From NCBI RefSeq assembly GCF_000143415.4, contig NW_003314302.1, positions 146,151 to 210,150 of the forward strand: a stretch of DNA of 64,000 bases, in the 5' to 3' direction. Each line of letters opens with the position of its first letter. The first letter of the stretch is position 1. The notes beneath the pieces were generated by a model. The model was not told the DNA's origin. It searched no databases and saw only the letters and a program-made list of their open reading frames with translations. The translations under genes and the position numbers were made by a program. Origin of the DNA: Selaginella moellendorffii. Its lineage: Eukaryota; Plantae; Lycopodiophyta. Of this stretch, positions 10,880 to 62,900 are shown piece after piece.

Positions 10880-11224
10880 TTAGTCTATTGTGGTTCCAGA
10901 GGTGGGAAGATCGTGATGGATCCATTCGTTAAATCCACCCTGGAGGTGGAAAACGTTTGTGAATCCTGCTTTTTGGAGTTCATATGCCGCTTTCAATGAT
11001 CTGTAAGGAGAGTTTCTTTCTGAGAGGTTTTGACGCAAGATCGGACGAGAGTACCTCGACTGACATCCAAAGAAGCGCTCGGGATCCTTGAACTTCTTTG
11101 CTTTAGGCCCTACGTGAGGAGAGTTCCTCCAATGCTGCACAGGACGATTACTTTCGTGTTCTTGTCGCTGTTGACAGCGTCGAGAGCTTTCTCGGCGAAT
11201 TCTGGGTTGCGCTCTGCCATGCAA
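10880..11224 (-). pseudogene. Rhodanese-like protein, C-terminal exons, copy 1
   Basis: ERNPEFAEKAL..VIVLCSIGG, KKFKDPERFFG, RSLKAAYELQKAGFTNVFHLQGGFNEW; frameshifted. Confidence 0.75.
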
Positions 11225-11678
11225 ACTCTTTCAGTATTCTCTAGTTAGAAGCGAGGGGGAAATTTAACCTGTGCCGGAGAAGTTCGTAAGCAAGGCAAAT
11301 CCCAGTTGCCTGCTCAACCAGACCAAAGCATAAGCAAAAAATCTTTGAGAAAAAAAGAGAAGCAGGAAACCTGGCATTTGCTTTGAGATCGTTTCCTTGA
11401 ATTTGTTGGAACAAGGGAGCAGACTTTGTGGGGAGAAGCTCTTGTTTATCACTTGCATGTCTAGTTTGGCAGAAGAGGTTGAGTATGCAATATCACACTT
11501 AAAAAGATTAAAGAAAGTCTAAAAATGAAACAAACAACATTTTGATTCCTTGCTCTCTTGAGGAGTCTTGAGCACAGCCGTTGCAGAAGGGTCATATCTT
11601 CCTAGATTTAGACTGGCAATCTTTAATCTTTCTTGCAGGTTAGGGTTCTTCAGTACGCTTCAATGATTAATTAGCTGA

Positions 11679-17100: not shown

Positions 17101-18940
17101 ATGGAAGCTCCTGCCCCTTGCAATCCCTTGCAAGCTGCGGCCTCCAGGTATGCTGCAGGGCAGAGATTACAGGAGAATGCGGGCCAGAAAGATGGTCTAG
17201 CGCCATTGTTTTGGCATCCGAGAACAAATCCAGGAAGAAGAATGTGGAGGACGATTTCGCTGCATACACGACGGCTGCGTTGGCTCTGCTAGAGGAGTAT
17301 GCTGCCGGATGCAGCGTGGCTGTGCTAGAGAAGAAGAAAGATTTGTCATCCAATCTGGGAGCAAAGGAAACTTTGCAGCGTGAGAAATTTTCTTCCAGAG
17401 TTTCTCAAAGGGAAAGTTCGACCATTGGACGAGGACGAAGAGAAAGAAGAGAAGGAAGACGAGAGAGTGGAAGTTTGGGAGGCGACTTGAGCCCAATGAC
17501 CGCCGAGGAGGAGCGTCAGCTACTGGCTGAAGCTGAGGAGGAGCTCTCGGAGCTCAGGAAGATGCATGGAGAGCGTTCCATTTTTGAGAATCGCTCGAAG
17601 CTTGGGATCGAAGGATGACGACCGCGTGGAGATAAGATGGAAGTCTGGAACGAAGAGGAGGACTCTTCCACAGATGTTTCTACGAGTGACAAGGAAGATC
17701 GAGCAGGAACAAGAAAGGCGTGCCTGCTGTGATGAGGTGCTTCGACCGAGCAAAGATTTACGTCAAAGCTGGGGATGGTGGCAATGGTGAAGGAGCCGAA
17801 ATGTTGGTTCTCAATCCCCTCTCTTCAAGCGTGATGGTTTGTTCTTCAGTTTTTGTTTTTTGTTCTTCCTGTCTTGATTTGTTTGAGCTGTGATCTTTCC
17901 AGGTGGGTCGATCTGGAGCTTAAACTTGTGGCAGACGTGGGAATTATAGGTGTTCCAAACGCTGGAAAGAGCACGCTACTAAGTGCTATCAGTGCTGCTC
18001 GTCCCGCCATTGCTGCGTATCCATTTACGACACTACTACCCAACCTTGGAGTGGTGTCGCTGGACTTCGATGCAACGATGGTTATAGCCGACTTGCCCGG
18101 GCTTCTCGAAGGTGCTCACGCTGGATACGGCCTCGGTCACGAATTTTTACGCCACTGAGCGCTGTCGAGTCCTGGTAAGCTTTTTGTTTTAAACTTACCT
18201 GCGTGCTAAAAGTTTCTTTGGAGAACCAGATTCATGTTATAGACGGTACGACTGCCAGAATTCGACTACGATGCAGTGACTGGAGCTGGAACTGTTTGAT
18301 CCTCGCCTTTGCTCCAACAAGATGGATGTCCCAGAGGCTGCCGAACGCTGGGAAAGTTTCCGGAAAGCTATGGAGTCTCGTGGAGTGGAGGTTCGTTCCA
18401 TGAGCGCCGCAAGTTGTACGTCATGCGTATAAGCTTCTACAGACAGTCCCAGTTGGTAAGTATGAAACACTACTTTTAACTCGACTGTGGAACTCTTTCT
18501 CTACTATTCTTGCAGAAGAACCCGTGTCGATCTCGAACGACGTAGCTTCGATGGTGAAAAAGGAGCGAAGTAGTCCCATTGGAGAATTTAAGGTGGACGT
18601 CGACCCAGAATCAGACTTGTGGCACATTTACGGTTCTGGTGTGGAGCGCTTCACGCAAATGACTAACTGGGAGTAAGCTTACATCTTTTATCTTCCCATT
18701 CAGTTCTTACACGACTCGCAAGTATTTCGAGTCCCTGCAACGATTCGAGCGGGTCTTAGAGTGCAGCGGGATAAACGCCGAGCTGAAAAGTAGAGGAATT
18801 CACGAAGGAGACAAAGTTGCGATCGGAGACGTGCGTTAAATTCACACTCTTCGTTCTGTGCTATGAGCCCACTGTTTGTTATTCTTTTTTCTTCGAACTT
18901 ACAGATAGTTTTCACTTGGCACGATTCCAATGATATTGCA
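17101..18940 (+). pseudogene. Chloroplast Obg GTPase (ObgC-like) with the Obg fold deleted
   Basis: [23 protein letters not shown] joined directly to [16 protein letters not shown]; 2-nt loss gives EFLRH* at 18158. Confidence 0.88.
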
Positions 18941-19091
18941 AATGTGGGGACTTGGAGACGCGGCCAGAGAGGCTAAAAAAGTTGGCCACACTGATGCCTC
19001 GTTTGTAGAAAAGGTGATCTTTTTTCTACAATTTTTCGCTTGCGTTCCAGAGAGACAAAAGGCCTGGTGGTTTACGTTTTTGCAGCGATAA

Positions 19092-20685
19092 TGGCTACCA
19101 AAAGTGTTAACATTTGGAAGATACAAAGGCCAGCCTCTCGGTTCTCTTCCAGCGAACTATCTGCAATGGATGGCACAGGAGCTAGACAACCACTGGAATG
19201 GCTTGGCCAGGCAAGTTCTATCAGAAAGAAAAGAAGGAGAAAGCTCGAGCACTCAAGAAGGTGGCAGCAACGTTTTTGCTCCGCAGAGTTCTCGCAAAGT
19301 TGGATCCATGGTTCTCACTTCGGGAAGTACAAAGGCCAAGCGCTGGGTTCTCTCCCGGACGTGTACCTGGAATGGATGGCGAACAACAGCACACACACTG
19401 GGGGAGACACGGGAGAGAGTTTCTGGATAGCAAGCACGGTGGTGATCGAGAAGTTCGCATCGCCCAAGAACAGGATGGATCGATCGCGTTGAAGAAGCAG
19501 AGCCTGGCTTGTCAAGAGAGGAGAGGCCTCGAGGAAGCCAAGCGGATCCATGCGCGGGTGAAAGCCAGCGCCTATCGCAACGATCGATACATTGCCAATC
19601 TTCTCATGGACATGTTTGGAGCTTGCGGGAGCGCGGACACGGCGCTGGAGATCTTTGAGAAGATCCAGGCGCCCAACATCTTCTCCTGGAACATCATCCT
19701 CAAGGTTGTCACGCAGAAGAATGGATGCGATCCAGAGGTGTGGAAGATTTTCGAGAAGATCCCGGAGAAGGAGAAGAATGCCGTGTCGTGGAACATCGTG
19801 CCGCGCTCGCGGCCGAGAAGGGGAATCTGCGCAAAGTGGAGGAGTTTTTCTACGAGAGGATGCCCGTCAAGGATGTGTTCTCCTGGACTACGCTGCTCAA
19901 TGCCTACATAACAAATGAGCGGTTTGACAAGGCCAGGGAGATCTTTGCGAGCCTCGATGACGAGAATGTAAACGCCGCTACGTGGAACACGATGATAGAA
20001 GGATATGCCCAGGCAGGGGATATGCTGCGAGCCAGAAAAATGTTCGATAGCATGCCCGAAAACAGCGTTGTGTCGTGGAATTTGATGATTACATAATGTG
20101 GAAGATGGATGACTCTACTTGCTTGCTGCCGGAGGCACTTGGACGGGGAGAATGGCAAGCTTTGCGCAGAGAGATTGTTTGTTTTGGATCCAGAGAACGT
20201 TTCACCGTACAAGATCCTCGTGGAGATCTACAGCCAAACCGGGAGAGCGAACGACATTGCCGGATTGAAGAAGATGGTGAGAGACAAAGGTCTCCACAAG
20301 CTCGAGGCCGAGAGCCTGATCCAGATCGATGGCATCACGCACAAGTTTCGAGTGGGAGACACTGCGCATCCGAGCATCAAGAAAGTTCGGAAGGAAGTTG
20401 CCAGGTTGACGAAGCTGCTGGAGAGAGAGATCATGGGTATAAACACGAGAACTTGGGATGGAGCAAGTGTGGCAGCGGTGTTCACAGTGAGAAGCTTGCA
20501 ATCGCGTACACGCTGTGTGAGAAGACCATGAGATCTCGCTCGTGAATAACTTGAGGATGTGCGGTGACTGCCATCCTTCTGCGAAGATGATCTCCAGCGT
20601 GGTGAAGAGGAAGATCACAGTACGTGACATGCAGAGGCTGCATGGTTTTGAGAATGATGTTTGCTCTTGCGCGGATACCTGGTAA
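19092..20685 (+). pseudogene. DUF3820-like x2 + PLS-E-DYW PPR, copy 2
   Basis: Same architecture as copy 1; retains HSEKLA and CGDCH zinc-binding motifs; internal deletion and frameshifts. Confidence 0.9.
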
Positions 20686-20688
20686 GTT

Positions 20689-21033
20689 TTAGTCTATTGT
20701 GGTTCCAGAGGTGGGAAGATCGTGATGGATCTATTCGTTAAATCGACCCTGGAGGTGGAAAACGTTTGTGAATCCTGCTTTTTGGAGTTCATATGCCGCT
20801 TTCAATGATCTGTAAGGAGAGTTTCTTTCTGAGAGGTTTTGACGCGAGATCGGACGAGAGTACCTCGACTGGCATCCAAAGAAGCGCTCGGGATCCTTGA
20901 ACTTCTTTGCTTTAGGCCCTACGTGAGGAGAGTTCCTCCAATGCTAAACAGGACGATTACTTTCTTGTTCTTGTCGCTGTTGACAGCGTCGAGAGCTTTC
21001 TCGACGAATTCTGGGTTGCGCTCTGCCATGCAA
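20689..21033 (-). pseudogene. Rhodanese-like fragment, copy 2
   Basis: Duplicate of 10880-11224. Confidence 0.75.
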
Positions 21034-21347
21034 ACTCTTTCAGTATTCTCTAGTTAGAAGCGAAATTTAACCTGTGCCAGAGAAGTTCGTAAGCAAGGCA
21101 AATCCCAGTCGCCTGCTCAACCAGACCAAAGCATAAGCAAAAAATCTTTGAGAAAAAAAGAGAAGTTCCTTGAATTTGTCGGAACAAGGGAGCAGACTTT
21201 GTGGAGAGAAGCTCTTGTTTATCACTTGCATGTCTAGTTTGGCAGAAGAGGTTGAGTATGCAATAGTAGTGGTGTGAGGCTTTGAGCTTTGCAAAGAGCA
21301 AGGAATTCCAGGAATAGATATGAGGATTACACAATATTCCCTTTATT

Positions 21348-23160
21348 TAACGGCAAGACTTTCTAGAGAATTTTAAAGCTAGCCATCCTATAAATTGAAG
21401 GGAATGGATATGCAACCAAAGTGCAAGAAATTGATATTGCTAAAAGGTATGTAAAAAATCAAATTGAGAAACACAATTTAAAGGAAGTTATTACACAATA
21501 AAAAATAAAAAAACTTAATGAAAACTGGTCCGGTCATGAAACAAGCTTGTAATTTTTTATTATTTTATTATTTTCCAATAAGGTTGCAATACGTTTTTCC
21601 TCAGTGTTAAAATTATGAAAAACTTGTGGAGACCAAAAATCTAATATGCAATTAAAAATAAAACTTTTGGTTGGCATGTTTAAATTATCCTAGAATTAAT
21701 ACTGTCATGATTTTACTTGGACAATTGTGGAGATGGGGATGGCAATGATGGTGGAGCTAAATAGGATTGTTCGTCCCATCTGTTAGTATCATCACTATGC
21801 CTAAGTGCTATGGTTGTTTTGCAGAGCTTGGAGAAAGGCTACCTTGTTCTTCATGGCACAGTTGGCTATACCCTCAGCAACTTGTATCTCCAAATCACAT
21901 GGCAAAGCTTTAGTGCAATTTAGATCCTAGACATTGTGCTTCAAGGTAAGGATTGTTTGCCTATAGTTTTTTTTTTGTCCCAAGAATGTAAAGGATTCTC
22001 ACAATTGTTGAGAAGTTATATTTATGATGAACTTATGGTTTTATTTCTTTGGTTTGTGTAAAGATTTTTATTAGCTGTTTAGAAATATGGTCAAGTCTTG
22101 GATGGAGGTACTAGCATTGGCAGAGTAAATGGTCTTGATGCTTGTCTTTGACATTGAAGTTATTATTTTTCCTATCTTAGAAGCTTGAAGGTGTTTTTTG
22201 ACAAATCTTATTTAAATCATAGGTAACTAATGTTTTATTTCTTGTTACTTTCATTGCTTCATATTATTCATTGTTTCACATATGTTAACTTTTCTGGTAA
22301 GGGAATGCAATCAATTACCCACAACAATGGAATTTGCAAGGAGCTCATCAATCTTTATTATTTCTACTATAAAGAGTTCATGGTAAGTTGGATTGGAATG
22401 GAAACTTTCCTTTGATTTCTTTGTTTTCTTAAGCTGAGTTTAATTTTTCATCCATTCAAGGTATGATACTCTTAATGCTCTCAGCAGCTTTAAGTTGTGA
22501 CACTAGAGTTAGCTCTATTTTTCTTCCAAAAAAAGCATGCAAGACAAACAAAAGCTAAGTAAGATTTTTTAGATTTCTCAAAACAACTAACATTGCACTT
22601 TTGCTTTGACAGAAAAATTCAATTTCTATGTGTGATTGATTGATTGATTGATTGATTTTTTATAATCTGTGAGGTTTGAGGAAAGAATATCACAATGATG
22701 CTTCCATGATGATCTAAAGGTGAAACATTCCAATTAAGTTTTCTTTTGTTGTTGATTAAGAGCTAATTTTTTCCTAAAAATAGGACGAGGAGAGAGCACC
22801 TATAAAGCACATGTCAGAATTACTTTAATAGATGACTGTCAAGGGTGGTTTGCATTGGCCACTGCAACTCAATCGTAAAGTGAGTAAGATAATATAAATT
22901 TTTTTTGCATATTTTCTAGGAGGATTTAATTGCTTTCCTTGGTGGTGTCTTTATGGGAATGATACACTTAAACAAGGAGCCTTTTAAAGGTTAGATAAAA
23001 AAAACTACTACTGCAGTAAACTTCTAGAAAAAGGTGATGAAAAATTGTGCTATTTGGCATCACTCAAAGTTTATCTAAGTATGCTATCACTTTTAATCTT
23101 GTGTTTGTCACATTAATATTTGGTATGTTTGACTATGGCACTCTAGCATAGATCACTATA
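21348..23160 (+). repeat. Unclassified repeat X, copy 2 (longer, with further decayed exon-like pieces)
   Basis: Similarity to 6179-7471 up to 22586; right boundary approximate. Confidence 0.6.
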
Positions 23161-27892: not shown

Positions 27893-28900
27893 GAGACTGT
27901 AAGCGACTAAATTTTCCATTTTACTTTAGTCACTTAACCACACGTCTGACCACTTGGAGGAGTCTCATTGACAACTTCCATAAGTCCAACTCAGGACTTG
28001 GGGCTTGCTAACCCCGAGAATGGCATCCATGCCACTCAACCTTAGCACTTGGTCCAAGTGCTCCACGTGTCCGATCCCATGATCGACACCCCAAGGTATC
28101 ACCAATGTACCGGCCTGTTACGCTAAGGCCATGCTTATTTACCTTGGTCACACTGGTGGTCCACCACCACTTGCATCACCGTCTTGGCCCTCCAAGACTA
28201 GGCAAACCATCCGTGAGTGGTCATCTCAGATCCACTCCTTAGCATCCTTAGGATGCCCACCGACAAGGGGAATAGCCTTCCCCAATATCCCTCTGTCAGT
28301 CTCCACTAAGTCCCTTTCTGCCCCTGGCCGTGTTTGCCAACACTGCCACTGGATCGAGACCCACAGGCCCGACCACTAAGTCCCACGGTCCTCTGGGACT
28401 TCCTCACCACACGACTGTGTCCTTGGTCACTACCCCAGAGGACTGCTCCTCTTCCTTTCCACAGTCTGGGCCTTTGGGACAACATTTCAGAACACCGTGG
28501 CCTTATGCGAGCCACCTGGGTACTCTCCTCGCCTTCTGCCCTTGGGTGCTCTAGCCATGGGCTTAGAGCGGGTTCCGTTGAGCCACACCAGGTATCCAAG
28601 TAGGTAGTGCCACCCACACTTGGACTGGGAGCATCGGCCAGTCGATCTCCCGGGGGAACTAGAGCCGGCTCTTGAACACTTCACCAAGCTACCCCACTTG
28701 TCGGTCTGTGTTCACTCTAGTCTTGGACTTCCCAGTGGGCAGCTCATCACCCAACACTGGGTCTGGCCTTCCTGGGCCAAACTGGCCTTTCCTGGCCAAA
28801 CTGGCTCCACTGCAGTCCTCCCCCTACTATACTTTTGGAGCTCACCAAACCCCCCAGGGTCTGGGAGACGAACGCTTTGGGCTTTCACCCTCTCAGGCTC

Positions 28901-29597
28901 CGGACTCGGACTCGGACTCGGACTCGGACTCGGACTCGGACTCGGACTCGGACTCGGACTCGGGCTCGGACTCGGGCTCGGGCTCGGTCTCGGCCTCGGC
29001 CTTGGTCTCGGTCTCGGTCCCGATCTCGATCTCGGTCTCGGTCTCGGTCCCGGTCTCGGTCCCGGTCTCGGTCTCGACTTCGGACTCCATCTCGGACTCC
29101 ATCTCGGACTCCATCTCGGACTCCACCTCGGGTCCATCTCGGACTCCATCTCGGACTCCATCTCGGGTCCATCTTGGGTCCATCTCGGACTCCATCTCGG
29201 ACTCCATCTCGGACTCCACCTCGGGTCCATCTCGGACTCCATCTCGGGTCCCATCTCGGACTCCACCTCAGGTCCATCTCGGGTCCATCTCGGACTCCAT
29301 CTCGGACTCCATCTCGGGTCCATCTCGGACTCCATCTCGGACTCCATTTCGGTCCATCTTGGGTCCACCTCGGACTCCATCTCGGACTCCATCTCGGGTC
29401 CATCTCGGACTCCACTTCGGACTCCAACTCGGGTCCATCTCGGGTCCACCTCAGACTCCACTTCGGACTCCAACTCGGGTCCATCTCGGACTCCACTTCG
29501 GACTCCAACTCGGGTCCATCTCGGACTCCACTTCGGACTCCAACTCGAGTCCATCTCGGACTCCACTTCGGACTCCAACTCGAGTCCATCTCGGACA
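28901..29597. repeat. Compound minisatellite in the 3' LTR: (GGACTC)n, (GGTCTC)n, 12-mer CTCGGACTCCAT, 11-mer CTCGGGTCCAT
   Basis: Seen directly. Confidence 0.97.
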
Positions 29598-32500
29598 CTC
29601 CCACGTGTCATGTGTTGGTCCTTTTGGGTCCCTTTTTGGAGCCTCGCCTTTTGCTCGCTTCGTGCTCGTTCCTTGAGCACTTCGTTGGGAGTTCCACTCC
29701 CGCTCTTGACTTTTCAAGTCGGAGCTTTTGGTCCAAACGTGTTACGCTCGTTTGGCTCTCGCTTCGGCCACTACCATGTGGCGCCCTTCCGGCTCCACTT
29801 TGGGGCCTAGGGATTTTGTGTCTCACAACTCCACCACCCATAGACGAAGTTCGATGTCCTCATCGAACGGTAAACCATTTCATAAAGTAACACCCACACG
29901 TGTTACCATTTCCATCCTTGGCACCTAGCCAATCTTTGTCTATGGTTTGACACCAAAGGCTCACCATGCCTTGTCCATCCTTTAAGGAGCGTAGTCTCTC
30001 CAACTTAGAGACTGATTGGACCACATGTAATGGTTCTCTCCTTTTATTGGTTTAGTTCTTGCTAAACCTCTTAGAGACCCTTCTCTAAGTCAATCCCACT
30101 ACTCCTTCTCGAGTAGTCTCAATTTCCATCTATTGAATGTTTGCACCTTGGAACTTTTACTCTTTTGACTTTTTGGGCGTCAATTTCCTAGGTGTCTCCA
30201 ACACCTTGCATTGCACAGATTGTGCAACTCCACTTCCCTATCCTAGGAAGTTCATTACTTGAGGGCACCATAATCCTCTCTTCTATTTCGTGCCACCTTG
30301 GGCACTAAGTTCCATTTATCATACTTTGTGCTAGGGCTATCCATGGCCCTATCATTTGGCTACCTTACCGCTCCCTCACTTGGAGCCTTTACTTCGCCAA
30401 ATTGGAGCACTTAGGAATCCATCCTTGAAAGTCCGCTTCCTTTCCCACAAGCTGTTAGCATCGAACACATTAGTGTTCCTTGGCTAACTTTGCCATTTGG
30501 ATCCCTTCCATTAAATTCCATGGCCCAAACTTTGGCCACTAGTCCTTTGCTCCTATCCTTGATTGTTGCACCCAGCAACATCGGATCGCTACCTCCATTT
30601 TTGAGGTATCCTTTCGGTTCCATAGCAAAGACTCTTCTTTGCCAAGTCCGGAGGATGTTCACCCCTAGTATGTCTCTTTAGCATATTCTGCTATGGGCTC
30701 GATCCATGGCCCAACTTTGTGACCCTCCCATGGGTCTTTTATAGAGACTACTTTCCTCGGACTCACTATGCCATCGGATGGACATAGTTTATTTCCCTTA
30801 GGTGCTCTTCCCACTTGGTTATCACGACCAAGCCACACCACCTTAAACAGTTCAATTTCAACATTTTGAACCAGGAACTTCATTCCTTAGCCAACCAAGG
30901 ACCTTGTCCTTTTCTGGCCATAAGATCACCTAGTGATCTCACCTTGGCACCCTAACAGAGTTGCCAAGATGTACTTGGCTTTCTAGACCTCCAAGTTGTT
31001 GACTATAACCCCGGGGGCATCCCCCACACTTGGCGGTGCACCCAAGCTAGCCCTTATGGCCAAGGGTTCATAGCAACTGAGATTAGGTGTCCCCATCTCA
31101 CTCACCACGACCTTGGTGCCACTTGCACCAAAGTGTTCAAGTTAGATATGCTGAGCTTTCACACTAAGCAATCTAACCATGCATCACGACTCCGAGGCAT
31201 CCCTCGCTTGGCGGTGTGCCCAAACCAGTCTCCCCACTGAGAGTCCATGACCACCGAAATATGAGTGTCCTCATATTCCAAACCATCACCACGCCCTAGT
31301 GATTTGGGACTCGAACCCAAGCACTAGAGGGTCGGGACTTGAACCCAACCTCCGTATATGCATCTACGGACGGCATCACACTAGATGCCTGGCGTGACTC
31401 CCCACGCCGGTGCACCAACCTATTTTTAAAGCGCGCTACAGATCACAGCTTAGGAACCTAGTTCCTCCACACTGCCAAGTCCTCTCACTTGACATGTCTG
31501 TGATCATGCATGGACTCCTCCATGCTCGGCCCCATGGCCCACCCTTTTTGAAGTTATCACCTTCAACTAGGGTATTTGTTCCCCTGACGTGCCAATCTCG
31601 CTTGGCAAGTCCTCCGACCACTGTAACATGGTTCCTGCATAAGCGTGAAAGTCCTTGACCATTGACTTTCGTTCAAAGCCCTCTCTTTGAACACTCGGGA
31701 ACTACTTCCCTAACCTTGATAGCCTTGCCTCATGGCAAGCTTCAAGACCACGCTTCTGCTGCGCCACTCTGATTTCGCGCGTTCCATGAACCATTTACAC
31801 TTGGCCTTTCTAGGTACTAAGCAACCTAGAATCGTCTTTGGGAACCTTGAAGGAACTCTGTCCCTCAGCTTGTTAAGGCCTCCGATTTTGCAAGCCTTCC
31901 AAATGCCACATAGTCTAACATGGACAATTCCATATTTTAGACTCTCCATGGCATCACGGTTGCTAGCGGCAACACCCTTGAGCCCCCACTTGATTCTCCA
32001 CTCCCAGCTGGCATAACCAACCTTGGTTATGCCCTTTGATTCTTATGGTTCGGTTCTATCCCCTTACTTCTTGCTTTTTGGCTTCACACCTTTCCTTTGG
32101 TCATTCTCCTCCAGACCAGGAGGATAGCTTTGCACTTTCTATCACGCTTTAGCAAGTATTCTTAGGGATGAACCTACCCAATAGCCTAGGGAGTGGTTCC
32201 TCAATCCGGGTATGCTCACCTTATAATCCCACACACTAGGATTACATTGTTGCTTATGGGCCTTTACATGCCTATCACTAGCCTTGCCAAAATTCCATTT
32301 TTGGCTTTGTCCAACTTGGGTAGACAGTCCTCTCCTGTCTCCGCAACCTTGGACATTTGGATAGCACCTTCTATCCATCATTCGCTAGGGACTTAGTCCC
32401 TTGGGCTTTATCCATTGCCCTCGCGACATCAAACACCACCTTCTGGTGTTCTAGAGTGTTCGGGTGTCCCAATGATGGCTTTCTTAACAATGAGTATTTC

Positions 32501-34893
32501 CTTTTATGACATTGACTTACTATATTGCAACATAAGCAACTTATCCCCCGTAAGGGTATATCCGACTTCCCTATACTAAAAGTCTTGGGTAGCTACCTTC
32601 TACCCGTTTAACCAGTTATTTTGCACCTCTTGCTTAGTTGCCTCATAGTTGTCAAGTCCTACAACTCATTGCTTGGTGCTTTCACACCTCCATCACTATC
32701 TGGGTCACCACACTCCAACTGCATGCTCTGCAGCTTAGGCTATGCCATTCCCATTTCCATTGGGATTCCTTTGGCAAGGGGTTCTCATGAACCCACCAAC
32801 ATAGCCTCAAGGTATCACACCTTGACACATTTGGTGTCTCCACACCATCGGCTCCACGAGCCTACCTCTATGACACTTTCCCTTCGTATCTAAGTCTTTG
32901 CCAAGACCAACACCGCCCTTTCTCATGCCAACCATCTGTTAGCATTGCACCATAGAGGTCACACACAACTTTGTGTCAAAGTTGTTTTCTGCTGGGAACA
33001 CCTTTCCCATAACTTTAGCATGGCATATTTTGCCATCGATGAGATACCCTCTGTTCTCATCCTTGGATCCTATGATCCCCCCCCATCCTTTGTGGGGTAC
33101 AACACACCTCAGTCCAAATGCTTCCATCGGTCCTTTTAGGACCATCCGTTGACTCTGCTTGAGTCATCCAGCAGTTTTGGACTTGGTTAATCCACAGACC
33201 CGTAAGGTCCTACTTGTGAGGCACTAGCTCACTGGAATACACTTCTTGCATTCCTGTCCTACTCAAAAGGACTATTTTCACAAGTGTTACTCCGACACTT
33301 GATTTTGTTCTCTGGGGGCAACCTTTGCCCCTTAGGACTACTTGTCCATGTGATGAGAACACCAACTCATCCACTTAATACACCCCCAACTCCTTGGGTT
33401 GTTCCAGCATTTATTAGAGGTAGCCCCGGCTACCTTTTCGAGGACTTGAGTCCTCTTCCGTATTTGACCTCCCACGGTCATTACTTCTGGTCTCGCTTTC
33501 ATGAGCACCAACCTCAACTATGTGAGGAAAATCTTGTGACTCCTTTATTGCTTTGGAGTCTTTATCTTTCCTGTGATCCCAACTGTAGTTGTTTACCACA
33601 ACTACATTAGCCAGTTTGTTAAGTCAAACGCTCATCTGGATCACATCCTCAACTCTTTGAGGAAAACCATATACTGTTCCCAAGATCCCAAAGTCGTTCC
33701 ATTATTGGCCCTTTTCTATCCACCACCTCGTCTACAAGTTCACACATGAACTGTAATGGAGAGCCATGTCTTCCCGACTTGCTACTCCTCAAGGATAGGC
33801 CCACTCCTCGGACCTTCCGATGCCAACACTAGTGGTGATATACTTGAGCACCAATAAAAGTCGGACTAAGGAACAGCTCCGATACCAAGTTGTAAGCGAC
33901 TAAATTTTCCATTTTACTTTAGTCACTTAACCACACGTCTGACCACTTGGAGGAGTCTCATTGACAACTTCCATAAGTCCAACTCAGGACTTGGGGCTTG
34001 CTAACCCCGAGAATGGCATCCATGCCACTCAACCTTAGCACTTGGTCCAAGTGCTCCACGTGTCCGATCCCATGATCGACACCCCAAGGTATCACCAATG
34101 TACCGGCCTGTTACGCTAAGGCCATGCTTATTTACCTTGGTCACACTGGTGGTCCACCACCACTTGCATCACCGTCTTGGCCCTCCAAGACTAGGCAAAC
34201 CATCCGTGAGTGGTCATCTCAGATCCACTCCTTAGCATCCTTAGGATGCCCACCGACAAGGGGAATAGCCTTCCCCAATATCCCTCTGTCAGTCTCCACT
34301 AAGTCCCTTTCTGCCCCTGGCCGTGTTTGCCAACACTGCCACTGGATCGAGACCCACAGGCCCGACCACTAAGTCCCACGGTCCTCTGGGACTTCCTCAC
34401 CACACGACTGTGTCCTTGGTCACTACCCCAGAGGACTGCTCCTCTTCCTTTCCACAATCTGGGCCTTTGGGACAACATTTCAGAACACCGTGGCCTTATG
34501 CGAGCCACCTGGGTACTCTCCTCGCCTTCTGCCCTTGGGTGCTCTAGCCATGGGCTTAGAGCGGGTTCCGTTGAGCCACACCAGGTATCCAAGTAGGTAG
34601 TGCCACCCACACTTGGACTGGGAGCATCGGCCAGTCGATCTCCCGGGGGAACTAGAGCCGGCTCTTGAACACTTCACCAAGCTACCCCGCTTGTCGGTCT
34701 GTGTTCACTCTAGTCTTGGACTTCCCAGTGGGCAGCTCATCACCCAACACTGGGTCTGGCCTTCCTGGGCCAAACTGGCCTTTCCTGGCCAAACTGGCTC
34801 CACTGCAGTCCTCCCCCTACTATACTTTTGGAGCTCACCAAACCCCCCAGGGTCTGGGAGACGAACGCTTTGGGCTTTCACCCTCTCAGGCTC

Positions 34894-35590
34894 CGGACTC
34901 GGACTCGGACTCGGACTCGGACTCGGACTCGGACTCGGACTCGGACTCGGACTCGGGCTCGGACTCGGGCTCGGGCTCGGTCTCGGCCTCGGCCTTGGTC
35001 TCGGTCTCGGTCCCGATCTCGATCTCGGTCTCGGTCTCGGTCCCGGTCTCGGTCCCGGTCTCGGTCTCGACTTCGGACTCCATCTCGGACTCCATCTCGG
35101 ACTCCATCTCGGACTCCACCTCGGGTCCATCTCGGACTCCATCTCGGACTCCATCTCGGGTCCATCTTGGGTCCATCTCGGACTCCATCTCGGACTCCAT
35201 CTCGGACTCCACCTCGGGTCCATCTCGGACTCCATCTCGGGTCCCATCTCGGACTCCACCTCAGGTCCATCTCGGGTCCATCTCGGACTCCATCTCGGAC
35301 TCCATCTCGGGTCCATCTCGGACTCCATCTCGGACTCCATTTCGGTCCATCTTGGGTCCACCTCGGACTCCATCTCGGACTCCATCTCGGGTCCATCTCG
35401 GACTCCACTTCGGACTCCAACTCGGGTCCATCTCGGGTCCACCTCAGACTCCACTTCGGACTCCAACTCGGGTCCATCTCGGACTCCACTTCGGACTCCA
35501 ACTCGGGTCCATCTCGGACTCCACTTCGGACTCCAACTCGAGTCCATCTCGGACTCCACTTCGGACTCCAACTCGAGTCCATCTCGGACA
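34894..35590. repeat. Same compound minisatellite in the 5' LTR
   Basis: Apparently identical array at offset +5993. Confidence 0.97.
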
Positions 35591-35825
35591 CTCCCACGTG
35601 TCATGTGTTGGTCCTTTTGGGTCCCTTTTTGGAGCCTCGCCTTTTGCTCGCTTCGTGCTCGTTCCTTGAGCACTTCGTTGGGAGTTCCACTCCCGCTCTT
35701 GACTTTTCAAGTCGGAGCTTTTGGTCCAAACGTGTTACGCTCGTTTGGCTCTCGCTTCGGCCACTACCATGTGGCGCCCTTCCGGCTCCACTTTGGGGCC
35801 TAGGGATTTTGTGTCTCACAGAGAC

Positions 35826-47831: not shown

Positions 47832-49220
47832 ATGGCGGAGCTGAGGGATGTGATATTTGAGAGTTTCCTTTGCTTGCCCTCTCAACTCGAGAGGATGGTT
47901 TCTAGAATTCTGGGTTGTGCGGTTCAATTTACCGGCATTCTAGGGATGGGGGGTTGGAATCTTGTGCTCGACGCGCACAAAGGTGATCAGCGCGTCGCCA
48001 TTCGACTCCCACTCGCAGGTCAGAAGAACCGCATCACAAGCGCACTGGCGGATTCGGGCTACGCCGCGACGCTCTTCCTGTCGGGGCTGGGCATACAGAC
48101 GGTCGTGGCAGGGCCCGTCCACGTGGCATCGCCACCGCTGCCCTACACGCCACGCGGCAAATCCCACCTCACTGTTATGCCGGTGGCAGAGGGCGTGCCG
48201 GCGTGGGAGCTGTGGAGGAAGGGCGCCAGCGTGGAGTGGAAGAAGACCGTGCTCGCTGACTTGGCAGGCATCACCGTCCGGCTCTACCACCGCCCGCTGG
48301 ATTCGATGGGGGGCATGGCGGTCGACTGTGCCGGGGCGTGCCACGTGGGACCGGAACCGCAGAGTCCGGTGTCCCAGGCGATGGAGCGCGGGCTGGACGT
48401 GGGGGCTCTCAGCCCCGGGCCTTACTCGTCGTGGAAGGAGTACGCGAGGAACCACATTGGAGGGCTGATGGTGCTGCACGGAAACAGCCGCAGGTATGGC
48501 GAATCGATACGGGCAAACGCGGCTATTTTGCTCAGGTGGCTGGACGAGTTCCAAGAATCTCGCGAGGGGAGCGGCTTTTTTCTTCACCACCCCGACTTTG
48601 GACCCACCCAAGTCCTGGTGGATCCGGCATCGGGACATGTCAAGTGCATTCTGGACTGGGACGGGGCCAAGACGGGGACCGTGCAGAGCTTGGCCACTTC
48701 TTTCTTTCTCCCGGCTTACTTCTGCAAGGTGGAGGACGAGGAGGAAGACGAGGAGCTGTTTGGCTTCTTCAAGCAGCAGCTGATTCAAGGGGGAGCGGCG
48801 GAGGTGGCCGCGCTTGCGAGGAGGCACTGGACGCACAAGTCCTGTGATCCTCAGGTGGTGTTCGAGGAGGAGATGGACGTTCCGTGCCGTGGTGGCGCGA
48901 AGTCTGTGCAAATTCGTTTGGAGAGGCTGTGTCGCAAAATGCAGAAGCTGGGGATTGTGGATGGCCAGGAGGAGGTTGTGTGCACCAGCCCGCCGTGGAG
49001 CAGGACACCAAGCTCTTGGTCTTCTTCAGACGAAGAAGGCGAGACAGATGGCGAAGATATGGCCGAGAAGGGTGCAACCATGTCCGACGACGACGAGCCA
49101 ACGGGTTCTTCCTGCTCCGAGTCCGAGTCGATCGATTTGGATTTGGAGAGCACTCCTAGTCCTAGCGCTTCATCTAGAGAAGATGTAAGCTACAAAATTA
49201 AAAGCTCAACCTCTGGTTGA
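47832..49220 (+). CDS. Aminoglycoside phosphotransferase (APH)/choline-kinase-like protein, fungal-type, 462 aa, acidic tail
   Basis: GGWNLV, VAIRLP, GPYSSWKEY, FFLHHPDFGPTQVLVDP, ILDWDGA; single long GC-rich ORF. Confidence 0.85.
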   Translation: MAELRDVIFESFLCLPSQLERMVSRILGCAVQFTGILGMGGWNLVLDAHKGDQRVAIRLPLAGQKNRITSALADSGYAATLFLSGLGIQTVVAGPVHVASPPLPYTPRGKSHLTVMPVAEGVPAWELWRKGASVEWKKTVLADLAGITVRLYHRPLDSMGGMAVDCAGACHVGPEPQSPVSQAMERGLDVGALSPGPYSSWKEYARNHIGGLMVLHGNSRRYGESIRANAAILLRWLDEFQESREGSGFFLHHPDFGPTQVLVDPASGHVKCILDWDGAKTGTVQSLATSFFLPAYFCKVEDEEEDEELFGFFKQQLIQGGAAEVAALARRHWTHKSCDPQVVFEEEMDVPCRGGAKSVQIRLERLCRKMQKLGIVDGQEEVVCTSPPWSRTPSSWSSSDEEGETDGEDMAEKGATMSDDDEPTGSSCSESESIDLDLESTPSPSASSREDVSYKIKSSTSG

Positions 49221-49539
49221 CTTGATCTGAAATCTAAAATTCTTTGAAGTTGGCTACTACAGAACTTTGACATGCGAGTGATGCCTCCTTGCCAATTCTA
49301 TGCAATTCTTGTTATGCAGAAAAGAGTACATCATGTTTTTGAATAGTTTAGCTGGTATGCAGCGTGTTTGTGAAGCAGGGACAAACACACAATAAATGCT
49401 GCTTGTTGCCAGGGGTATCAACGAGGTGACGTTTCTTTCGAGTAAAAAGTCTCTGCTACTACAAACGCTTACTTATAAAGGCTGACAGAACACAGGCCAG
49501 AAGAAATGCATGATCACTGAAACAAACAAGCAAGATCAA

Positions 49540-50110
49540 AATCCATCGGCTCGTTTCCACAAACTCCTCCGTGGCCTCCTCGAGCAGCAAACCCCCACCA
49601 GCACCTCGTATAAAACTCCAGAGCCTCGTCGTGGACGTAGCCCGACCTTGCACGCTGGGCACCAGAGCTTGGAACCCGCCCTTGCTCATTCCCTAATCGC
49701 GTTGGTGGCCTTGCGCAGTGTGAGTAAAGGAGACCTTTACCAGGCACAGGATCTTCTTGTCATCTTCGCTCCTCCTTCATCCTTGCCAGGAGATGGCCGG
49801 TTCCGCCCGTGGGCGTTGATCAGCGTCGTGAAGGAGTAGACGTTTCACTTCGAAGACCTTCTCCAGCAGCCCGTCGCGGCCCGTGATCCATGGTGTAGAT
49901 GTGCTGGGTGCTGGCGCTGCATGGACTTGAAGCGCGTCGTGCTGCATCGTGAGCTTGCTGCGGTAGACATCGCAGCGGGAGCTGGCTCAGCGAGTTGACT
50001 CGTTCTCGTAGCCACGATCATGGTGGGCGTTTTGACAGGGCTTGGGCACACCTCTGCACAGACGAGCGGCGTTCGTTCTCTTGCTGCTTCTGTGTTGTCA
50101 CCCGCGGCTT
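49540..50110 (-). pseudogene. Heavily deleted pTAC2-like PPR-SMR gene
   Basis: Colinear pieces VNSLSQLP, FKSMQRQ, HIYTM, GLLEK, NVYSFTTLINAHGRN, EFY..WW..LEEAT resemble pTAC2 as recalled. Confidence 0.55.
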
Positions 50111-50112
50111 CT

Positions 50113-50430
50113 AAAGATGGACGAGGCGATGACCTGCTGGAGACGATGGCCGAGACTGGAAGCTGTAGATGAGCCGGCTGTGCTGCGCGTGGATGACTTT
50201 GCCGACGATCTCGGCGTGGGATTCCCGCTCCACTCGTCCAGAGCTTCGGCCTTGGAGGCACTGGGAGCCGAGGAGCGGGAGGCTCTCAACTTGGAGCAAG
50301 AGATCGTCATTCGCGAGACTCGATTTGGAGGCCTTAGCTGGTGGCTGCCCGAGTCGGGAGGAGGAACTGGAGATGAAGAGTGAGGTGGACACTCTCCGTG
50401 AGACGGCGGCGATGCCGAGGCGAGAAGAAC
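50113..50430. pseudogene. Scrambled fragments of the neighbouring PPR gene
   Basis: 50113-50164 matches 52795-52845 (+); 50170-50345 is an inverted copy of its N-terminus (SKAEALD.WSG..EIVGKVI). Confidence 0.85.
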
Positions 50431-50639
50431 TGCAGTGGAAGGAGAAGGGCAATGGCAATAACAGGGATGCGAAGATAGGAGGAGGCAGCCATGGAAGCAG
50501 AGGCAAGATGGTTTCGCACGCTAAAAGAACTGACTAGGACCATACTACCGACACACTCCTGCCTGGTTCTCTGTAACTTGATCCTCTTAAGTTGAAAGCA
50601 CCAAGAAGCGTATGACAATCTTCGTCAGGCCTACCTGAG

Positions 50640-50905
50640 AAAAGCCAGGAGCTTGGATCTGTCCAAGGGCAACAAGTTTGGTGGACATGTTCTTGAAATG
50701 CAGCAGCATAGTCAATGCTCGTCGAGTCTACGACAAAGTCCCTGCCGTGAATGTTCCCGAGTTCACTGCATTGGATCGATCCTTGGCGCTCTTGAGAATG
50801 GCACTGTGGCCAGGAACCGGGCCAAATCTTTTTGTCCAAACGCGAATGCCAATGGCTTTTAATGTAGCTCCAGCCATGGCCAAATCGAGCTGGGCGAGGA
50901 TGAAC
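50640..50905 (+). pseudogene. PLS-type PPR fragments
   Basis: VDMFLKCSSIVNARRVYDK; SHGQIELGE (E-domain-like). Confidence 0.55.
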
Positions 50906-50993
50906 TCGATGAGCTTGACGAATTGTCGTTAAAAGTCAACGTAAGGCCAACGGTCGATGTTATTATTTTTAAGAGATATTAGTCAATCTGTAA

Positions 50994-60070: not shown

Positions 60071-61455
60071 GTTGAAGAGTTGAGTTCATGAGTTAAGTTC
60101 AATTTTCAATTATAATTTAATATAAAAATTATAAACTTTAAAATATTAAGGTTATGGCAAACTTAATAATTTCATAACTCTCTACATATTGTATAGATAA
60201 ATTTTTTCTAAAAGACACTTCTAATTTTAATAATTTAAATATTAATTATATGTCATAATAGGGATGTTTATTAGAATATAAAATAAGATGTTTTCAGAAA
60301 AAGTATTATTGTCACTTCCTTAAATATATACTCTATACTTTCTGGCTAGTAAATGTCAAGTTTGTCAAAATTTAAAAAATTATTAAATTTTAAATAGATT
60401 TTATATAAGACCATATAACCATTTGAAAGGAAAAAAAAACTATTGATGTAAACTTGTTGCATATAAAAGTGAGACTTGATTCCTCTCTAGAATATATTCT
60501 TGAGGGATTTGTCATAGTATAGTGTCTAGAATTTATATATCTTCACTTACACTCTTATTTGAAGAAAAAGAATCACATATAAACATTTGTGGGTTCTAAT
60601 GTTCGTAATTTTAACTTTTACAATCTTTCTTCTTAGAGTAGTAATTCAAGGGCTAGAAGCTATAATAGTCATCCCATTGAAAATTACAATTCTGTGACTT
60701 TCATGTAATGCCTTATATATTTTCTAGCTTTTGATGAAAACAATGGTGATGATTATTATGATGGTATATATGCTCTTGTGATGTACTGCAATATCACGCA
60801 CTCGAAAGACTACTATAAAATGTTTTTTGAGATGGTAAAGACAAAAATAAAGACATATAAGTACTATGGGCAGTATTATGAAAAGAACACTCTTAAGTAT
60901 ATAAATGAAAAGTGAAATTAAAAAATGTTTTTTATTAGTTAAATAAAGTATAATAAGTTTATATTATTAATAGAGAATAAATATTGATGTCTTAGCAAAT
61001 ATAATTAACTTTGAAAGTCTTCTATAATTTAGCAATAGTAAGTCTTGTCTGGTGTGTATGAATATCCACTTTAGAATCTTGGTATAAGATGTTGATGAAG
61101 ATGTAATATATACGTTTGCAAGAAGTATATACTTTCCCATATTCCTTGTGCTTCATAAAGTTTGATTGTGTCTTGAATGATGATTGTATACTCTCCACTT
61201 TCTATTTTGACTATATACTCCTTTATAAGCACAGTGATATACTTCATGGAGAGAATTTCACACTCAAGCATTTAAGTTAAGTTTATTTTACCTTGCTTTT
61301 ACTTAAATACAGTACTAATAAATTTAACTGCCTTACCTTTTCTACTTGGCCTTCTATACATCTCTGTAGGAATAATTCTAGTTCAACTCTCCTCTCAAGA
61401 TTGAAACTAGATTTCTCAAGGTTTGCAATCTCATCTTAGATAAGCAGGCCCTATT

Positions 61456-62900
61456 ATTTGGCTACCTTACCGCTCCCCCCTTTGGAGCATCCACTTTCGC
61501 CAAATTGGAGTGGTTGGGAATCCATCCTTGGGGAAACATTGCCTTTCCCACAATCCATTAGCACCCAACACATTAGTGTTCTTGGCCTAACTTTGCCATT
61601 TGGACTCTTTCCCATGATTCCCATGGCTCTTTTCTTAGCCACTAGTATTTTGCTCCTATCCTTGATTGGTGCACCCAGCAACATAGGATTGCTACCTCCA
61701 TTTTTGAGGTTTCCTTTTGGTTCCATAGCAAACACCTTGCTTTGCTAACTCCAGAGGGTGTTCACCCCTAGTACGTCTCTTTAACATTTTCTGTCATGGG
61801 CTCTATCACAGCTCAACCTTTTGAAACCCTCCCTTGGATCTCTTATAGAGACTACTTTCCTTGGACTTACTATGCCATAGCATTGACATAGCTCATTTCC
61901 CTTAGGTGTTCTTCCCACTTGGTCACCTTGACCAAGCCACACTTTTATCAATAGTTCAAATCAACACTTTGAACTAGGAATCATATTCCTTAACCCAAAC
62001 AAAGACTTTGTCCTTGTTTAGCCACAAGATCACTTAGTGATCTCATCTTGACCCCTTAATAGGTCTACCAATAGAAACTAGGTGTTCCAGACCTTTCTAA
62101 GTTGTTGACTATGACCCCGGGAGCATCCCCCACACTTGGCGGTGCGCCCAAGCCAGCCCTTCCAGCCAAGGATCCATAGCAACTAAGACTTGGGTGTCCC
62201 CATCTCATTCACCACGTCCTTGGTGCCCTTTGCACCAAAGTGTTCAAGTTAAATATGCCGAGCTTTCACTCTAAGCAATCTAACCCTGCATCATGACTCC
62301 GGGGCATCCCCCGTTTGGCGGTGTGTCCAAGCCAATCTCCTCATTGAGAGTCCATGACCACCGAAATATGAGTTTCCTCATATTCCAAACCATCACCACG
62401 CCCTAGTGATTTGGGACTCGAACCCAAGCACTAGAGGGTTGGGACTCGAACCCAACCTCCGTATATGCATCTACGGATGGCATTACACCGGATGCCTGGT
62501 GTGACTCCCCACACTGGTGCACCAACATGTACTTAAAGTGTGCTACAGATCATAGCTTAGGAACCTAGTTCCTCCGCACTACCAAGTCCTTTCACTTGGC
62601 ATGTTGTGATCCTGCATAGACTCCTCCATGCTCAGCCCCATGGGCCACCCTTTTGAAGTTGGCTCCTTCAACTAGGGTATTCGTTCCCCTGACTTGCCAA
62701 TCTCGCTTGGCAAGTCCTCCAACCATTGTAACATGGTTCCTGCACAAGCGTGAAAGTCCTTGACCATCAACTTTCGTTCAAAGCCCTCTCTTTGAACACT
62801 CGGGAATTACTTCCCTAACCTTGATAGCCTTGCCTCATGGCAAGCTTCAAGACCACACTTCTGCTGCGCCACTCTGATTTCGCGCGTTACATGAACCAAC
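61456..62900 (-). mobile_element. Fragment of a second member of the 27898-35820 LTR family (internal region)
   Basis: Colinear with ~30355-31795. Confidence 0.92.

Follow-up and report, generated by a model that had tools for sequence, protein, structure and literature searches.

The 64-kb stretch of Selaginella moellendorffii DNA that we analysed (the window) carries what is, to judge by its sequence, a young, very abundant and protein-less LTR retrotransposon of the LARD type, transcribed from the minus strand. Inside it lie two neighbouring structured modules, A and B, which are evidently true paralogues left by an old tandem duplication of a ~185-nt stretch. On balance, we take the pair to be a tandemly duplicated part of a LARD-type genomic RNA that is under selection for its sense-strand structure, probably for use by the proteins of a partner element. 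The modules themselves do not stand out within a chain of ~90 hairpins and are not a discrete special device.

Plant genomes are filled with non-autonomous LTR retrotransposons, and the selection and copying of a gene-less RNA by the proteins of another element is, to our knowledge, barely understood. The duplicated modules provide a natural experiment of one fold in two diverged copies within an active lineage, and the two copies allow selection on RNA shape to be separated from plain inheritance of sequence. If covariation across the whole family confirms the fold, the 140-nt junction would become a tractable object that could reveal what the RNA of a parasitic retroelement needs.

Anatomy and abundance of the element

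The element and a second copy of its family occupy the following positions in the window.

27898..29827, minus strand: 3′ LTR, a 1930-bp direct repeat with TG..CA ends
~28840-29630: block of 12/35-nt tandem repeats within the 3′ LTR
29828..29839, minus strand: polypurine-tract (PPT)-like run GGGTGGTGGAGT, adjoining the 3′ LTR and preceded by a 7-bp hairpin
29828..33890, minus strand: internal domain of 4,063 nt, protein-free, with ~90 short hairpins in a chain and purine-rich loops
33876..33887, minus strand: PBS-like TGGTATCGGAGC, 3 nt internal to the 5′ LTR
33891..35820, minus strand: 5′ LTR, direct-repeat partner of 27898..29827
61447..62898, minus strand: second family member (copy 2), an LTR-less internal fragment of 1.45 kb, 86% identical
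62102-62242: module A of copy 2
62288-62440: module B of copy 2

The two LTRs (1930 bp each) are 99.9% identical, have the termini TGTAAG...CTCACA and are accompanied by a 5-bp TSD, GAGAC. The orientation of the element, minus, follows from the position of TGGTATCGGAGC, which we take to match the initiator-Met PBS of plants at 11 of 12 positions. LTRs with a TSD, a PBS together with a PPT, and a non-coding interior of several kilobases are thus all present, as in LARD-type elements. The account of LARDs within PMC7215508, which includes barley Sukkula (Kalendar et al. 2004), gives them long LTRs, a PBS and a PPT, a multi-kb non-coding interior and presumed mobilization in trans. Set against that account, the present element is alike in its LTRs, its PBS and PPT and its protein-less multi-kb interior, whereas its near-continuous series of ~90 mostly perfect hairpins differs, a comparison made by description.

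The family is extremely abundant, with 91,276 contigs from one DNA run aligning to the element; the query was 4,291 nt of it and the output consisted of summary variant tables, in which haplotypes are unlinked. Its expression is near nil, at ~10 reads per 9.2 million records in each of two RNA-seq runs. A scan of metagenome and viral contigs for the conserved family patterns gave 0 matches. The first-pass annotation had pictured the element as a parasite of an autonomous partner; no gag-pol element with matching ends lies within the 64-kb window. The window also encodes an 811-aa PPR protein.

The interior contains 89 perfect hairpins (at least 5 Watson-Crick pairs), compared with 17.5±3.7 in shuffles, and on the sense strand their loops are 72% A+G and 7% C. 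The folding z of 150-nt pieces of the interior is about -3 on both strands, while five control regions gave 0 to -0.5; because the two strands behave alike, a cause at the level of the DNA or of its copying would fit this figure as well. With z of -4.1 and -2.6, the two modules fold as the interior does on average (~-3). The RNA structure of the interior is conserved between the two family copies and between the two paralogues. We found no description of such a hairpin-chain interior, at five times the shuffle expectation, in the searchable literature.

Two paralogous modules and their common fold

Both modules read on the minus strand, and their parts are given below in the same coordinates.

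30996..31136, minus strand: module A (3′ on the RNA), covariance-model match of 153.9 bits
Module A, helices: H1 31113-31131; linker CGUGGUGA 31102-31109; H2 31079-31101 (GACA loop)
Module A, junction: P0 31063-31074 with 31002-31012; Ha 31048-31062; Hb 31028-31047, loop GUGCACCG; Hc 31013-31025
31137..31180, minus strand: unduplicated spacer between the modules, with a ~40-nt hairpin of its own in the MFE of the modules folded jointly
31181..31333, minus strand: module B (5′ on the RNA), covariance-model match of 132.7 bits
Module B, helices: H1 31304-31320, T-arm-like, within an outer stem; linker CGUGGUGA 31286-31293; H2 31256-31279 (GACA loop)
Module B, junction: P0 31240-31251 with 31183-31193; Ha 31226-31239; Hb 31206-31225; Hc 31194-31203
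31334..31420, minus strand: four adjoining 6-bp hairpins directly 5′ of module B on the RNA, including a second T-arm-like hairpin (31334-31346) and a hairpin at 31351-31370 with loop GAUGCAUA

Both modules lie where the first-pass annotation had put them, with the hairpins that it named: GGGG-CATC-CCCC and CGAGG-CATC-CCTCG, TTGG-CGGTGYRC-CCAA, a variable hairpin, a TGTC-loop hairpin, CACCACG and a final hairpin. It had, however, written these strings on the plus strand; they are present there, but the sense of the element is minus, so the RNA is their reverse complement. The identity of A and B is ~51%, and their soft local alignment score is 212, compared with 87.3±13.7 (maximum 150) for dinucleotide shuffles (n=2000) and 89.6±13.1 (maximum 126) for control windows of 150 nt taken elsewhere in the element. 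A covariance model of the module retrieved four instances in the window, all of them already known, and nhmmer gave the same result; there is therefore no third module in the window. Two insertions of an independent mobile unit (SINE/MITE) were considered and rejected, as the window holds no copies outside the family and the depth of the modules in the contigs equals that of their flanks. In the spacer, a 3-nt deletion variant occurs at 31157 among the family contigs.

On the sense strand each module begins with a 5′ hairpin (H1), followed by a second one with a GACA cap (H2) and by a closing stem P0 of 11 pairs around three small hairpins, and for module B the MFE of the single sequence yields the complete architecture. 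An imperfect closing stem had been suggested from the letters alone, and RNAalifold does recover P0 in four of the four sequences (11 pairs, 4 of them compensatory); the stem, which extends over ~60 nt, has a bulge and includes G.U pairs. The linker CGUGGUGA and the Hb loop CACCGC are both invariant and are complementary to each other over 6 pairs, an invariance that places this pairing outside what covariation can test. The linker also contains GUGGUG, which it has in common with the PPT-like run. The Hb loop variants GCGCAC, GUGCAC and GCACAC are visible CpG decay.

Copy 2 retains both modules, as had been noticed before, with CGGGG-CATC-CCCCG at 62301-62314. The accompanying impression that this part is better conserved than its flank is correct for the low-coordinate flank (~91% versus ~83%) but not for 31338-31793, which is itself ~92% conserved.

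Substitutions in the stems

The consensus structure was inferred from the same four sequences, modules A and B in two copies, so that one comparison is deep and two are shallow. For the sense strand, RNAalifold gave -31.2 kcal/mol and 31 shared pairs, 10 of which are changed on both sides among the four sequences. In these pairs 99.2% of the cells are paired, compared with 32-47% when the partners are slid, and the 10 compensated pairs compare with 0-3 under the same sliding. Column-shuffled alignments contained 4.8±1.8 compensated pairs (P=0.008), and the energy z was -4.4. The earlier observation that the loops are kept while the stems change in a compensatory manner is therefore borne out as covariation above chance, at a depth of four sequences. 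Folding of the antisense strand gave a weaker result (-19.5 kcal/mol, 25 pairs, 6 of them compensated, P=0.14), with six A.C breaks at positions where the sense fold has G.U.

Between copy 1 and copy 2, the modules contain three compensated pairs when 0.26 are expected (P=0.0014), and 0 single breaks when 5.4 are expected. A stricter test, in which the MFE of one paralogue was mapped onto the other through a structure-blind alignment and the substitutions were permuted, was marginal: 35 of 47 pairs were kept in one case (31.6±2.4 expected, P=0.12) and 31 of 40 in the other (25.1±2.4, P=0.011). Over the whole 1.45 kb that both copies have in common, stems contain 94 of the differences versus 123 expected, and 40 pairs are broken versus 69.5±5.1 expected.

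All 10 compensatory pairs are double transitions (GC<->AU), the class that cytosine deamination on both strands produces most easily; the warning in the first-pass annotation that deamination can mimic covariation thus applies to every one of them. The best supported of the listed family variants within the modules (31048, 31057 and 31134) turn a sense A-U pair into G.U or fall in a loop. Imperfect hairpins with a G.U or A.C mismatch number three in all. At the first pair beyond the perfect stems, G.U occurs 18 times and A.C seven times, weakly above the composition ratio of 1.29. From the compensated pairs, the weaker antisense fold and the avoidance of stems by substitutions, we infer that selection maintains the local fold of the sense-strand RNA.

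Possible roles of the structure and competing explanations

In the reading that we prefer, the element, being non-coding, depends on the Gag and RT of an autonomous partner to recognize, package and reverse-transcribe its RNA. Stable stems that show unpaired purines would be the type of surface that nucleocapsid proteins bind, the stems would also protect the RNA, and the duplication would supply extra area of the same binding surface. The notion of a cis-acting RNA in a non-autonomous element, put forward in the first-pass annotation, survives to the extent that the sense-strand structure appears constrained; the discrete module device that was part of it does not. Its more specific versions fare poorly: nothing points to a ribozyme, and for a packaging or dimerization signal the modules have an unusual position, 2.55-2.9 kb downstream of the PBS, such signals usually being found in the 5′ leader.

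A discrete cis element might nevertheless be formed by the modules or by the block 30996-31420, such as the core packaging handle for the Gag of the partner, a dimerization site acting through kissing or linker loops, or a set of extra plus-strand primer sites, with the other hairpins as filler. We think this unlikely, although several properties set the block apart. Together with its 5′ flank it is ~91-92% conserved versus ~83% elsewhere in the common stretch, and their summed contig depth is ~2x that of 30420-30995; the block includes the sole part found duplicated and has a long-range junction unlike plain hairpins. The complementarity of the invariant linker CGUGGUGA to the Hb loop CACCGC, the GUGGUG in common with the PPT-like run, and the loops with the 6-nt palindromes GUGCAC and AUGCAU point the same way. 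However, folding z and stem conservation are no better in the block than in the rest of the element, and other interior bins are equally deep in the contigs. Among 44 loops, 2 are palindromic when 0.86 are expected (P=0.21, no enrichment), GUGCAC is confined to module A of copy 1 and absent from module B and from copy 2, and GTGGTG is weakly enriched (7 versus 3.3 expected, P ~0.05). The modules also begin at a distance of 2,557 nt from the 5′ LTR, downstream of it, which is an unusual site for such signals. A leader 8-mer complementary to the linker was discarded as chance-level, such 8-mers with one mismatch occurring 54 times in the window. It is similarly improbable, in our view, that the hairpins and their compensations are a neutral by-product of quasi-palindrome template switching in reverse transcription, or of two-strand cytosine deamination, and that the fold has no function. 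Deamination alone predicts A.C as frequent as G.U and more single than double changes, whereas the modules show 0 single breaks and three compensated pairs; the six A.C breaks are confined to the antisense fold, and local template switching leaves the compensations of the ~60-nt-spanning P0, with its bulge and G.U pairs, unexplained. The strong strand asymmetry of the loops, with 7% C on the sense strand, also argues against a neutral origin. What such an origin does account for are the mostly short and perfect stems (89), the similar z-scores on both strands, the GC<->AU type of all 10 compensations, the CpG decay in the Hb loop, the predominance of transitions in the family variation and the marginal outcome of the strict mapping test.

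Three further explanations draw on the searches for known sequences. An origin of the modules from tRNA-like units, or mimicry of such units, with a role as an internal Pol III promoter or in processing or transport of the RNA, appears very unlikely. The sequence GGGTTCRAGTCCC does form a T-arm with a perfect B-box-like loop, is found four times in the window (two per copy) versus 0.17 expected, and in one case is H1 of module B; the junction is a cloverleaf in outline, and tRNA-like sequences occur in non-autonomous LTR elements including those of Selaginella moellendorffii, within the LTRs (PMC10886601). However, ARAGORN found two tRNAs in the window, both unrelated to the modules, and the Rfam tRNA model gave no match in the element to E=10. 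Module A has no T-loop in its H1, which places the T-arm outside what both modules have in common. Loops like the B box (GGTTCGANNCC) are present twice, but reading by eye showed no convincing A box 30-60 nt upstream, no A-box-like motif at good spacing and, in the 300 nt downstream, no terminator in the form of a T-run. An undescribed class of self-cleaving ribozyme would be in keeping with a conserved multi-helix junction, invariant unpaired stretches and the lack of a known-class match, yet we give it hardly any credence: similar structure continues throughout the 4 kb, positive evidence is nil, and the RNA reads are too few to reveal a cleavage site. The first-pass statement that no ribozyme consensus is matched agrees with Rfam 15, which returned nothing to E=10 from 29800-33920 on both strands, and nothing in the modules or element when the whole window was scanned at the gathering score; the described self-cleaving classes (hammerhead, HDV, twister, pistol, hatchet, hairpin and VS) were thus all without a match in the element. 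Equally remote is a decayed coding region, be it a former gag-pol or a captured gene, to which a 94-codon stop-free stretch on the plus strand of copy 1 (30956-31237) could be attributed. The same frame has stops in copy 2, and a word-based search of a protein collection with the module-B ORF was empty. None of 22 stop-free pieces from both strands, taken within or beside the modules and along the entire interior, had a Pfam match (16 of the 22 scanned to E=1), in line with the original description of the region as non-coding. In addition, the longest sense stop-free piece of the interior has 110 codons, all frames have 17-28 stops per 1.45 kb, and exact look-ups of four ORF products from the interior and the LTR in protein records gave no match.

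Next to the preferred reading of a duplicated part of a structured genomic RNA stands a more specific proposal, which we consider quite doubtful: that the junction of each module (the 11-pair stem, the three hairpins and the invariant CGUGGUGA linker, able to pair with the invariant CACCGC loop) is a self-contained handle that recruits the Gag of the partner or a host RNA-binding factor, and that it was duplicated for avidity. If it were true, the handle would be a new kind of packaging or dimerization device of retrotransposons and the clearest way into the persistence of a structure-only 4-kb genome.

Known systems resemble the modules in part. In Psi/DIS signals, clustered stem-loops expose purines to which nucleocapsid binds, and loops with 6-nt palindromes initiate dimerization; these signals are single, short and situated in the 5′ leader. 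The modules likewise have stem-loops with exposed purines and palindromic loops, but they lie far downstream within a 4-kb chain, and the palindromic loops in them show neither conservation nor enrichment. The TRIMs Cassandra (5S) and Helenus (tRNA-like), the latter reported in Selaginella moellendorffii (PMC10886601), are elements of <1.3 kb with a small-RNA-derived insert in the LTR, a recognizable tRNA or 5S with A and B (or C) boxes (PMC10886601, PMC7215508). They and the present element are non-autonomous LTR elements with structured, small-RNA-like modules, the counterpart here being the B-box-like T-arms at H1 of module B and at its neighbour; in the present case, however, the likeness to tRNA is limited to the T-arm, which is situated in the interior and comes without a match to the tRNA model. 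Sireviruses are autonomous copia elements with repeated conserved non-coding motifs, among them inverted repeats and several copies of the PPT close to the 3′ LTR, the motifs clustering at the PPT and in the LTRs (PMC2829016). The module linker recalls them in having the GUGGUG of the element's own PPT-like run, a likeness of 6 nt that is weakly above chance.

Anatomy and coding capacity of the element

Direct-repeat and end analysis showed that both modules, two paralogous structured stretches (module A, 30996-31136; module B, 31181-31333), lie within an intact LTR retrotransposon, with TG..CA termini on its LTRs and a 5-bp duplication (GAGAC) on either side. The element is young, and its family is hugely abundant, with 91,276 contigs from one DNA run placed on the element. 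Its main features are:

27898-29827 and 33891-35820: LTRs, direct repeats of 1,930 bp each, 99.9% identical
adjoining the high-coordinate LTR, minus strand: primer-binding-site (PBS)-like site, reading ACT-TGGTATCGGAGC
29828-29839, minus strand: polypurine-tract (PPT)-like run GGGTGGTGGAGT at the interior's end, adjoining the low-coordinate LTR

We take TGGTATCGGAGC to be a putative initiator-Met-type primer-binding site, agreeing with that site at 11 of 12 bases. Since the PBS-like and PPT-like sites are both on the minus strand, the element is transcribed from that strand, and its RNA is therefore the reverse complement of the plus-strand strings by which the first-pass annotation described the module hairpins. 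The PPT-like run is preceded, 15 nt upstream, by a 7-bp hairpin (UUCGAUG-AGGA-CAUCGAA, 29840-29865, minus strand). About 800 bp of each LTR (28840-29630 and 34834-35620) consists of 12-nt and 35-nt tandem repeats, which produce long spurious ORFs in every frame.

The description of the element as non-coding holds. No long ORF was found in the 4,063-nt interior (29828-33890), and the part shared with copy 2, a second family member without LTRs, carries 17-28 stops per 1.45 kb in every frame. Pfam matched 0 of 22 stop-free pieces from both strands (16 of them scanned to E=1), leaving decayed coding sequence, proposed as what might refute a structured RNA, as a highly improbable source that no result favours. 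No Rfam family matched the element, either at gathering score or with the cut-off relaxed to E=10, in agreement with the earlier impression that the modules fit no hammerhead, HDV, twister or pistol consensus, and ARAGORN found no tRNA within the element.

Fold and covariation of the modules

Modules A and B are homologous, with an identity of ~51% and a soft local alignment score of 212, compared with 87.3±13.7 (maximum 150) in 2000 dinucleotide shuffles and 89.6±13.1 (maximum 126) for windows elsewhere in the interior. All of the hairpins listed by the first-pass annotation are present in both. Both modules are also retained, as it had stated, in copy 2, a 1.45-kb internal-domain fragment (61447-62898) that is 86% identical; a covariance model of the four module instances matched only those four in the window. 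When module B is folded alone on the sense (minus) strand, the minimum free energy (MFE) structure yields the full architecture, all on the minus strand:

H1: T-arm-like hairpin within an outer stem (module B MFE)
31102-31109 (A) and 31286-31293 (B): unpaired, invariant linker CGUGGUGA (module B MFE)
H2: 11-pair hairpin with a GACA loop (module B MFE, also in the consensus)
P0: long closing stem enclosing the small hairpins Ha, Hb and Hc (MFE and consensus)
Ha: variable small hairpin within P0
Hb: small hairpin within P0, loop GYRCACCG
Hc: small hairpin within P0, loop GAUG

When the four sense sequences (two family copies of two paralogues) are aligned by MAFFT, blind to structure, RNAalifold finds H2, P0, Ha, Hb and Hc again, as 31 pairs with -31.2 kcal/mol, and ten of these pairs have changed on both sides. 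The recovery of P0, with four compensated pairs, establishes that the imperfect closing stem proposed earlier is real and common to both modules. In each module the linker CGUGGUGA could form six base pairs with CACCGC, an invariant stretch in the loop of Hb (31034-31039, 31212-31217); as all these sites are invariant, the pairing is beyond the reach of covariation. The linker also has GUGGUG in common with the PPT-like run.

In the consensus, 99.2% of 124 cells are paired, and sliding the 3' partners by 1-3 columns reduces this to 32-47%, with 0-3 compensated pairs. Because RNAalifold selects good-looking structures, it was rerun on 500 column-shuffled alignments, which gave energies of -15.8±3.5 (z=-4.4) and 4.8±1.8 compensated pairs (P=0.008 for the ten observed), in line with the claim that the stems change compensatorily. 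Within the modules the two family copies differ at 26 positions: in three consensus pairs both partners were replaced and pairing was retained (0.26 expected, P=0.0014), each of six single changes produces G.U, and no pair is broken, against 5.4 expected. A stricter test, in which the structure of one paralogue was mapped onto the other via the blind alignment and substitutions were permuted, was marginal (35/47 pairs kept versus 31.6±2.4, P=0.12; 31/40 versus 25.1±2.4, P=0.011), its weakness being due in part to misaligned H1/H2 arms and to an alternative helix that competes in module A. The ten compensations are without exception GC<->AU, so the caveat that deamination can mimic covariation stands for each of them singly. 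Deamination alone predicts A.C as frequent as G.U and more single than double changes; the pattern seen differs. Altogether, the sense-strand fold has been kept through ~50% divergence between the paralogues, with stems protected from substitution.

The antisense strand yields a weaker consensus (-19.5 kcal/mol, 25 pairs, six compensated, P=0.14), with six A.C breaks at the positions of sense-strand G.U. Folded together, A and B reach z=-5.6 on the sense strand versus -3.1 on the antisense. Across the interior, purines make up 72% and C 7% of the bases in sense-strand hairpin loops. Of the family variants listed for the modules, the three with the best support (31048, 31057 and 31134; 40-90% of contig depth in one DNA run) either convert A-U to G.U or affect a loop when read on the sense strand. 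RNA-seq yielded ~10 reads per run, the first mate mostly on the plus strand, which would fit minus-strand RNA if the library is standard stranded. Taken together, the strand evidence points to the sense RNA as the folded one, short of proof.

A hairpin-rich interior and its possible role

Sliding 150-nt windows fold with z of about -3 on both strands throughout the interior, compared with 0 to -0.5 in five control regions of the window, and perfect hairpins (stems of 5 pairs or more, loops of 3-8 nt) number 89 in the interior versus 17.5±3.7 in shuffles. Across the 1.45 kb common to both copies, predicted stems carry 94 differences versus 123 expected, and 40 pairs are broken versus 69.5±5.1. 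This hairpin density, folding and stem conservation indicate that the modules are a duplicated stretch of a far larger structured RNA. The duplicated fold claimed for a cis-acting module stands; its special status within the element does not. Likewise, the modules (~91%) are better conserved than the low-coordinate flank (~83%), as claimed, but not than the high-coordinate one (~92%).

Among 5-mers of the sense interior, CCAAG shows the strongest over-representation (22 versus 6.8 expected) and many stems are YUUGG/CCAAG, which hints that some hairpins descend from others or that one motif is favoured. An adjacent pair of minus-strand hairpins containing GGGTTCRAGTCCC as loop plus stem (31306-31318 and 31334-31346; copy 2, 62413-62425 and 62441-62453) has a perfect tRNA T-arm or B-box look, occurring four times in the window versus 0.17 expected. 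A 6-bp minus-strand hairpin present in both copies (31351-31370; ~62458-62477) has the 8-nt loop GAUGCAUA, which contains the palindrome AUGCAU between purines, and resembles a kissing-loop site of retroviruses; across the element as a whole, palindromic loops show no enrichment (P=0.21). The 8-nt palindrome GGTGCACC occurs five times in the window versus 0.5 expected, with four sites in the family (31035-31042, 31409-31416, 61668-61675, 62516-62523), and only the 31409/62516 site is common to both copies.

We lean, on balance, towards the modules being a duplicated part of a protein-less RNA whose structure is under selection for trans-mobilisation; the anatomy in this reading is near certain, the function less so. 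Selection would act on the local structure of the genomic RNA, and the most economical reason may be that a partner's Gag and RT bind, package and copy it. Nucleocapsid domains bind stable stems with unpaired purines, as established for retroviruses. Stable stems displaying unpaired purines could provide such a binding surface, and duplicating the 185-nt unit would enlarge it. That the modules instead form a discrete packaging, dimerisation or priming element is unlikely. In its favour are how well the block is conserved, its junction, the complementarity between linker and loop, the shared GUGGUG and two palindromic loops, but none of these exceeds chance, and the position, 2.55-2.9 kb downstream of the PBS, is atypical.

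Equally improbable is that the hairpins are a neutral by-product of copying or mutation. Short perfect stems, z-scores that are equal for the two strands and compensations made up of transitions alone would suit such an origin; the absence of the A.C class, the stem that spans a long range and the asymmetry of the loops speak against it. The two GGGTTCRAGTCCC hairpins are the sole point for a tRNA-like or Pol III module, which is quite improbable as the homologous module A hairpin has no T-loop and tRNA models do not match. A ribozyme, which no result favours, is less probable still.

Known systems and other features of the window

In every testable respect the element is a large retrotransposon derivative (LARD), a protein-less LTR retrotransposon with a long interior. 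Cassandra and Helenus, the latter also found in S. moellendorffii, are non-autonomous LTR elements with small-RNA-like modules; unlike A and B, these lie in the LTRs and are recognisable as tRNA or 5S (PMC10886601). The searchable full-text literature yielded no account of a hairpin-chain interior or of the module.

Elsewhere the window contains:

6221-11362 and 17869-22422: direct segmental duplication, 81-97% identical (mostly 95-97%), spanning PPR-DYW-type ORFs
605-5575 and 48725-56089: inverted duplication, 80-95% identical
51157-53592, plus strand: ORF for a pentatricopeptide-repeat protein of 811 aa (PPR_2, E=5e-197)
2439-2511 and 50994-51067: two nuclear-type tRNA genes, Arg-CCG and Ile-AAT
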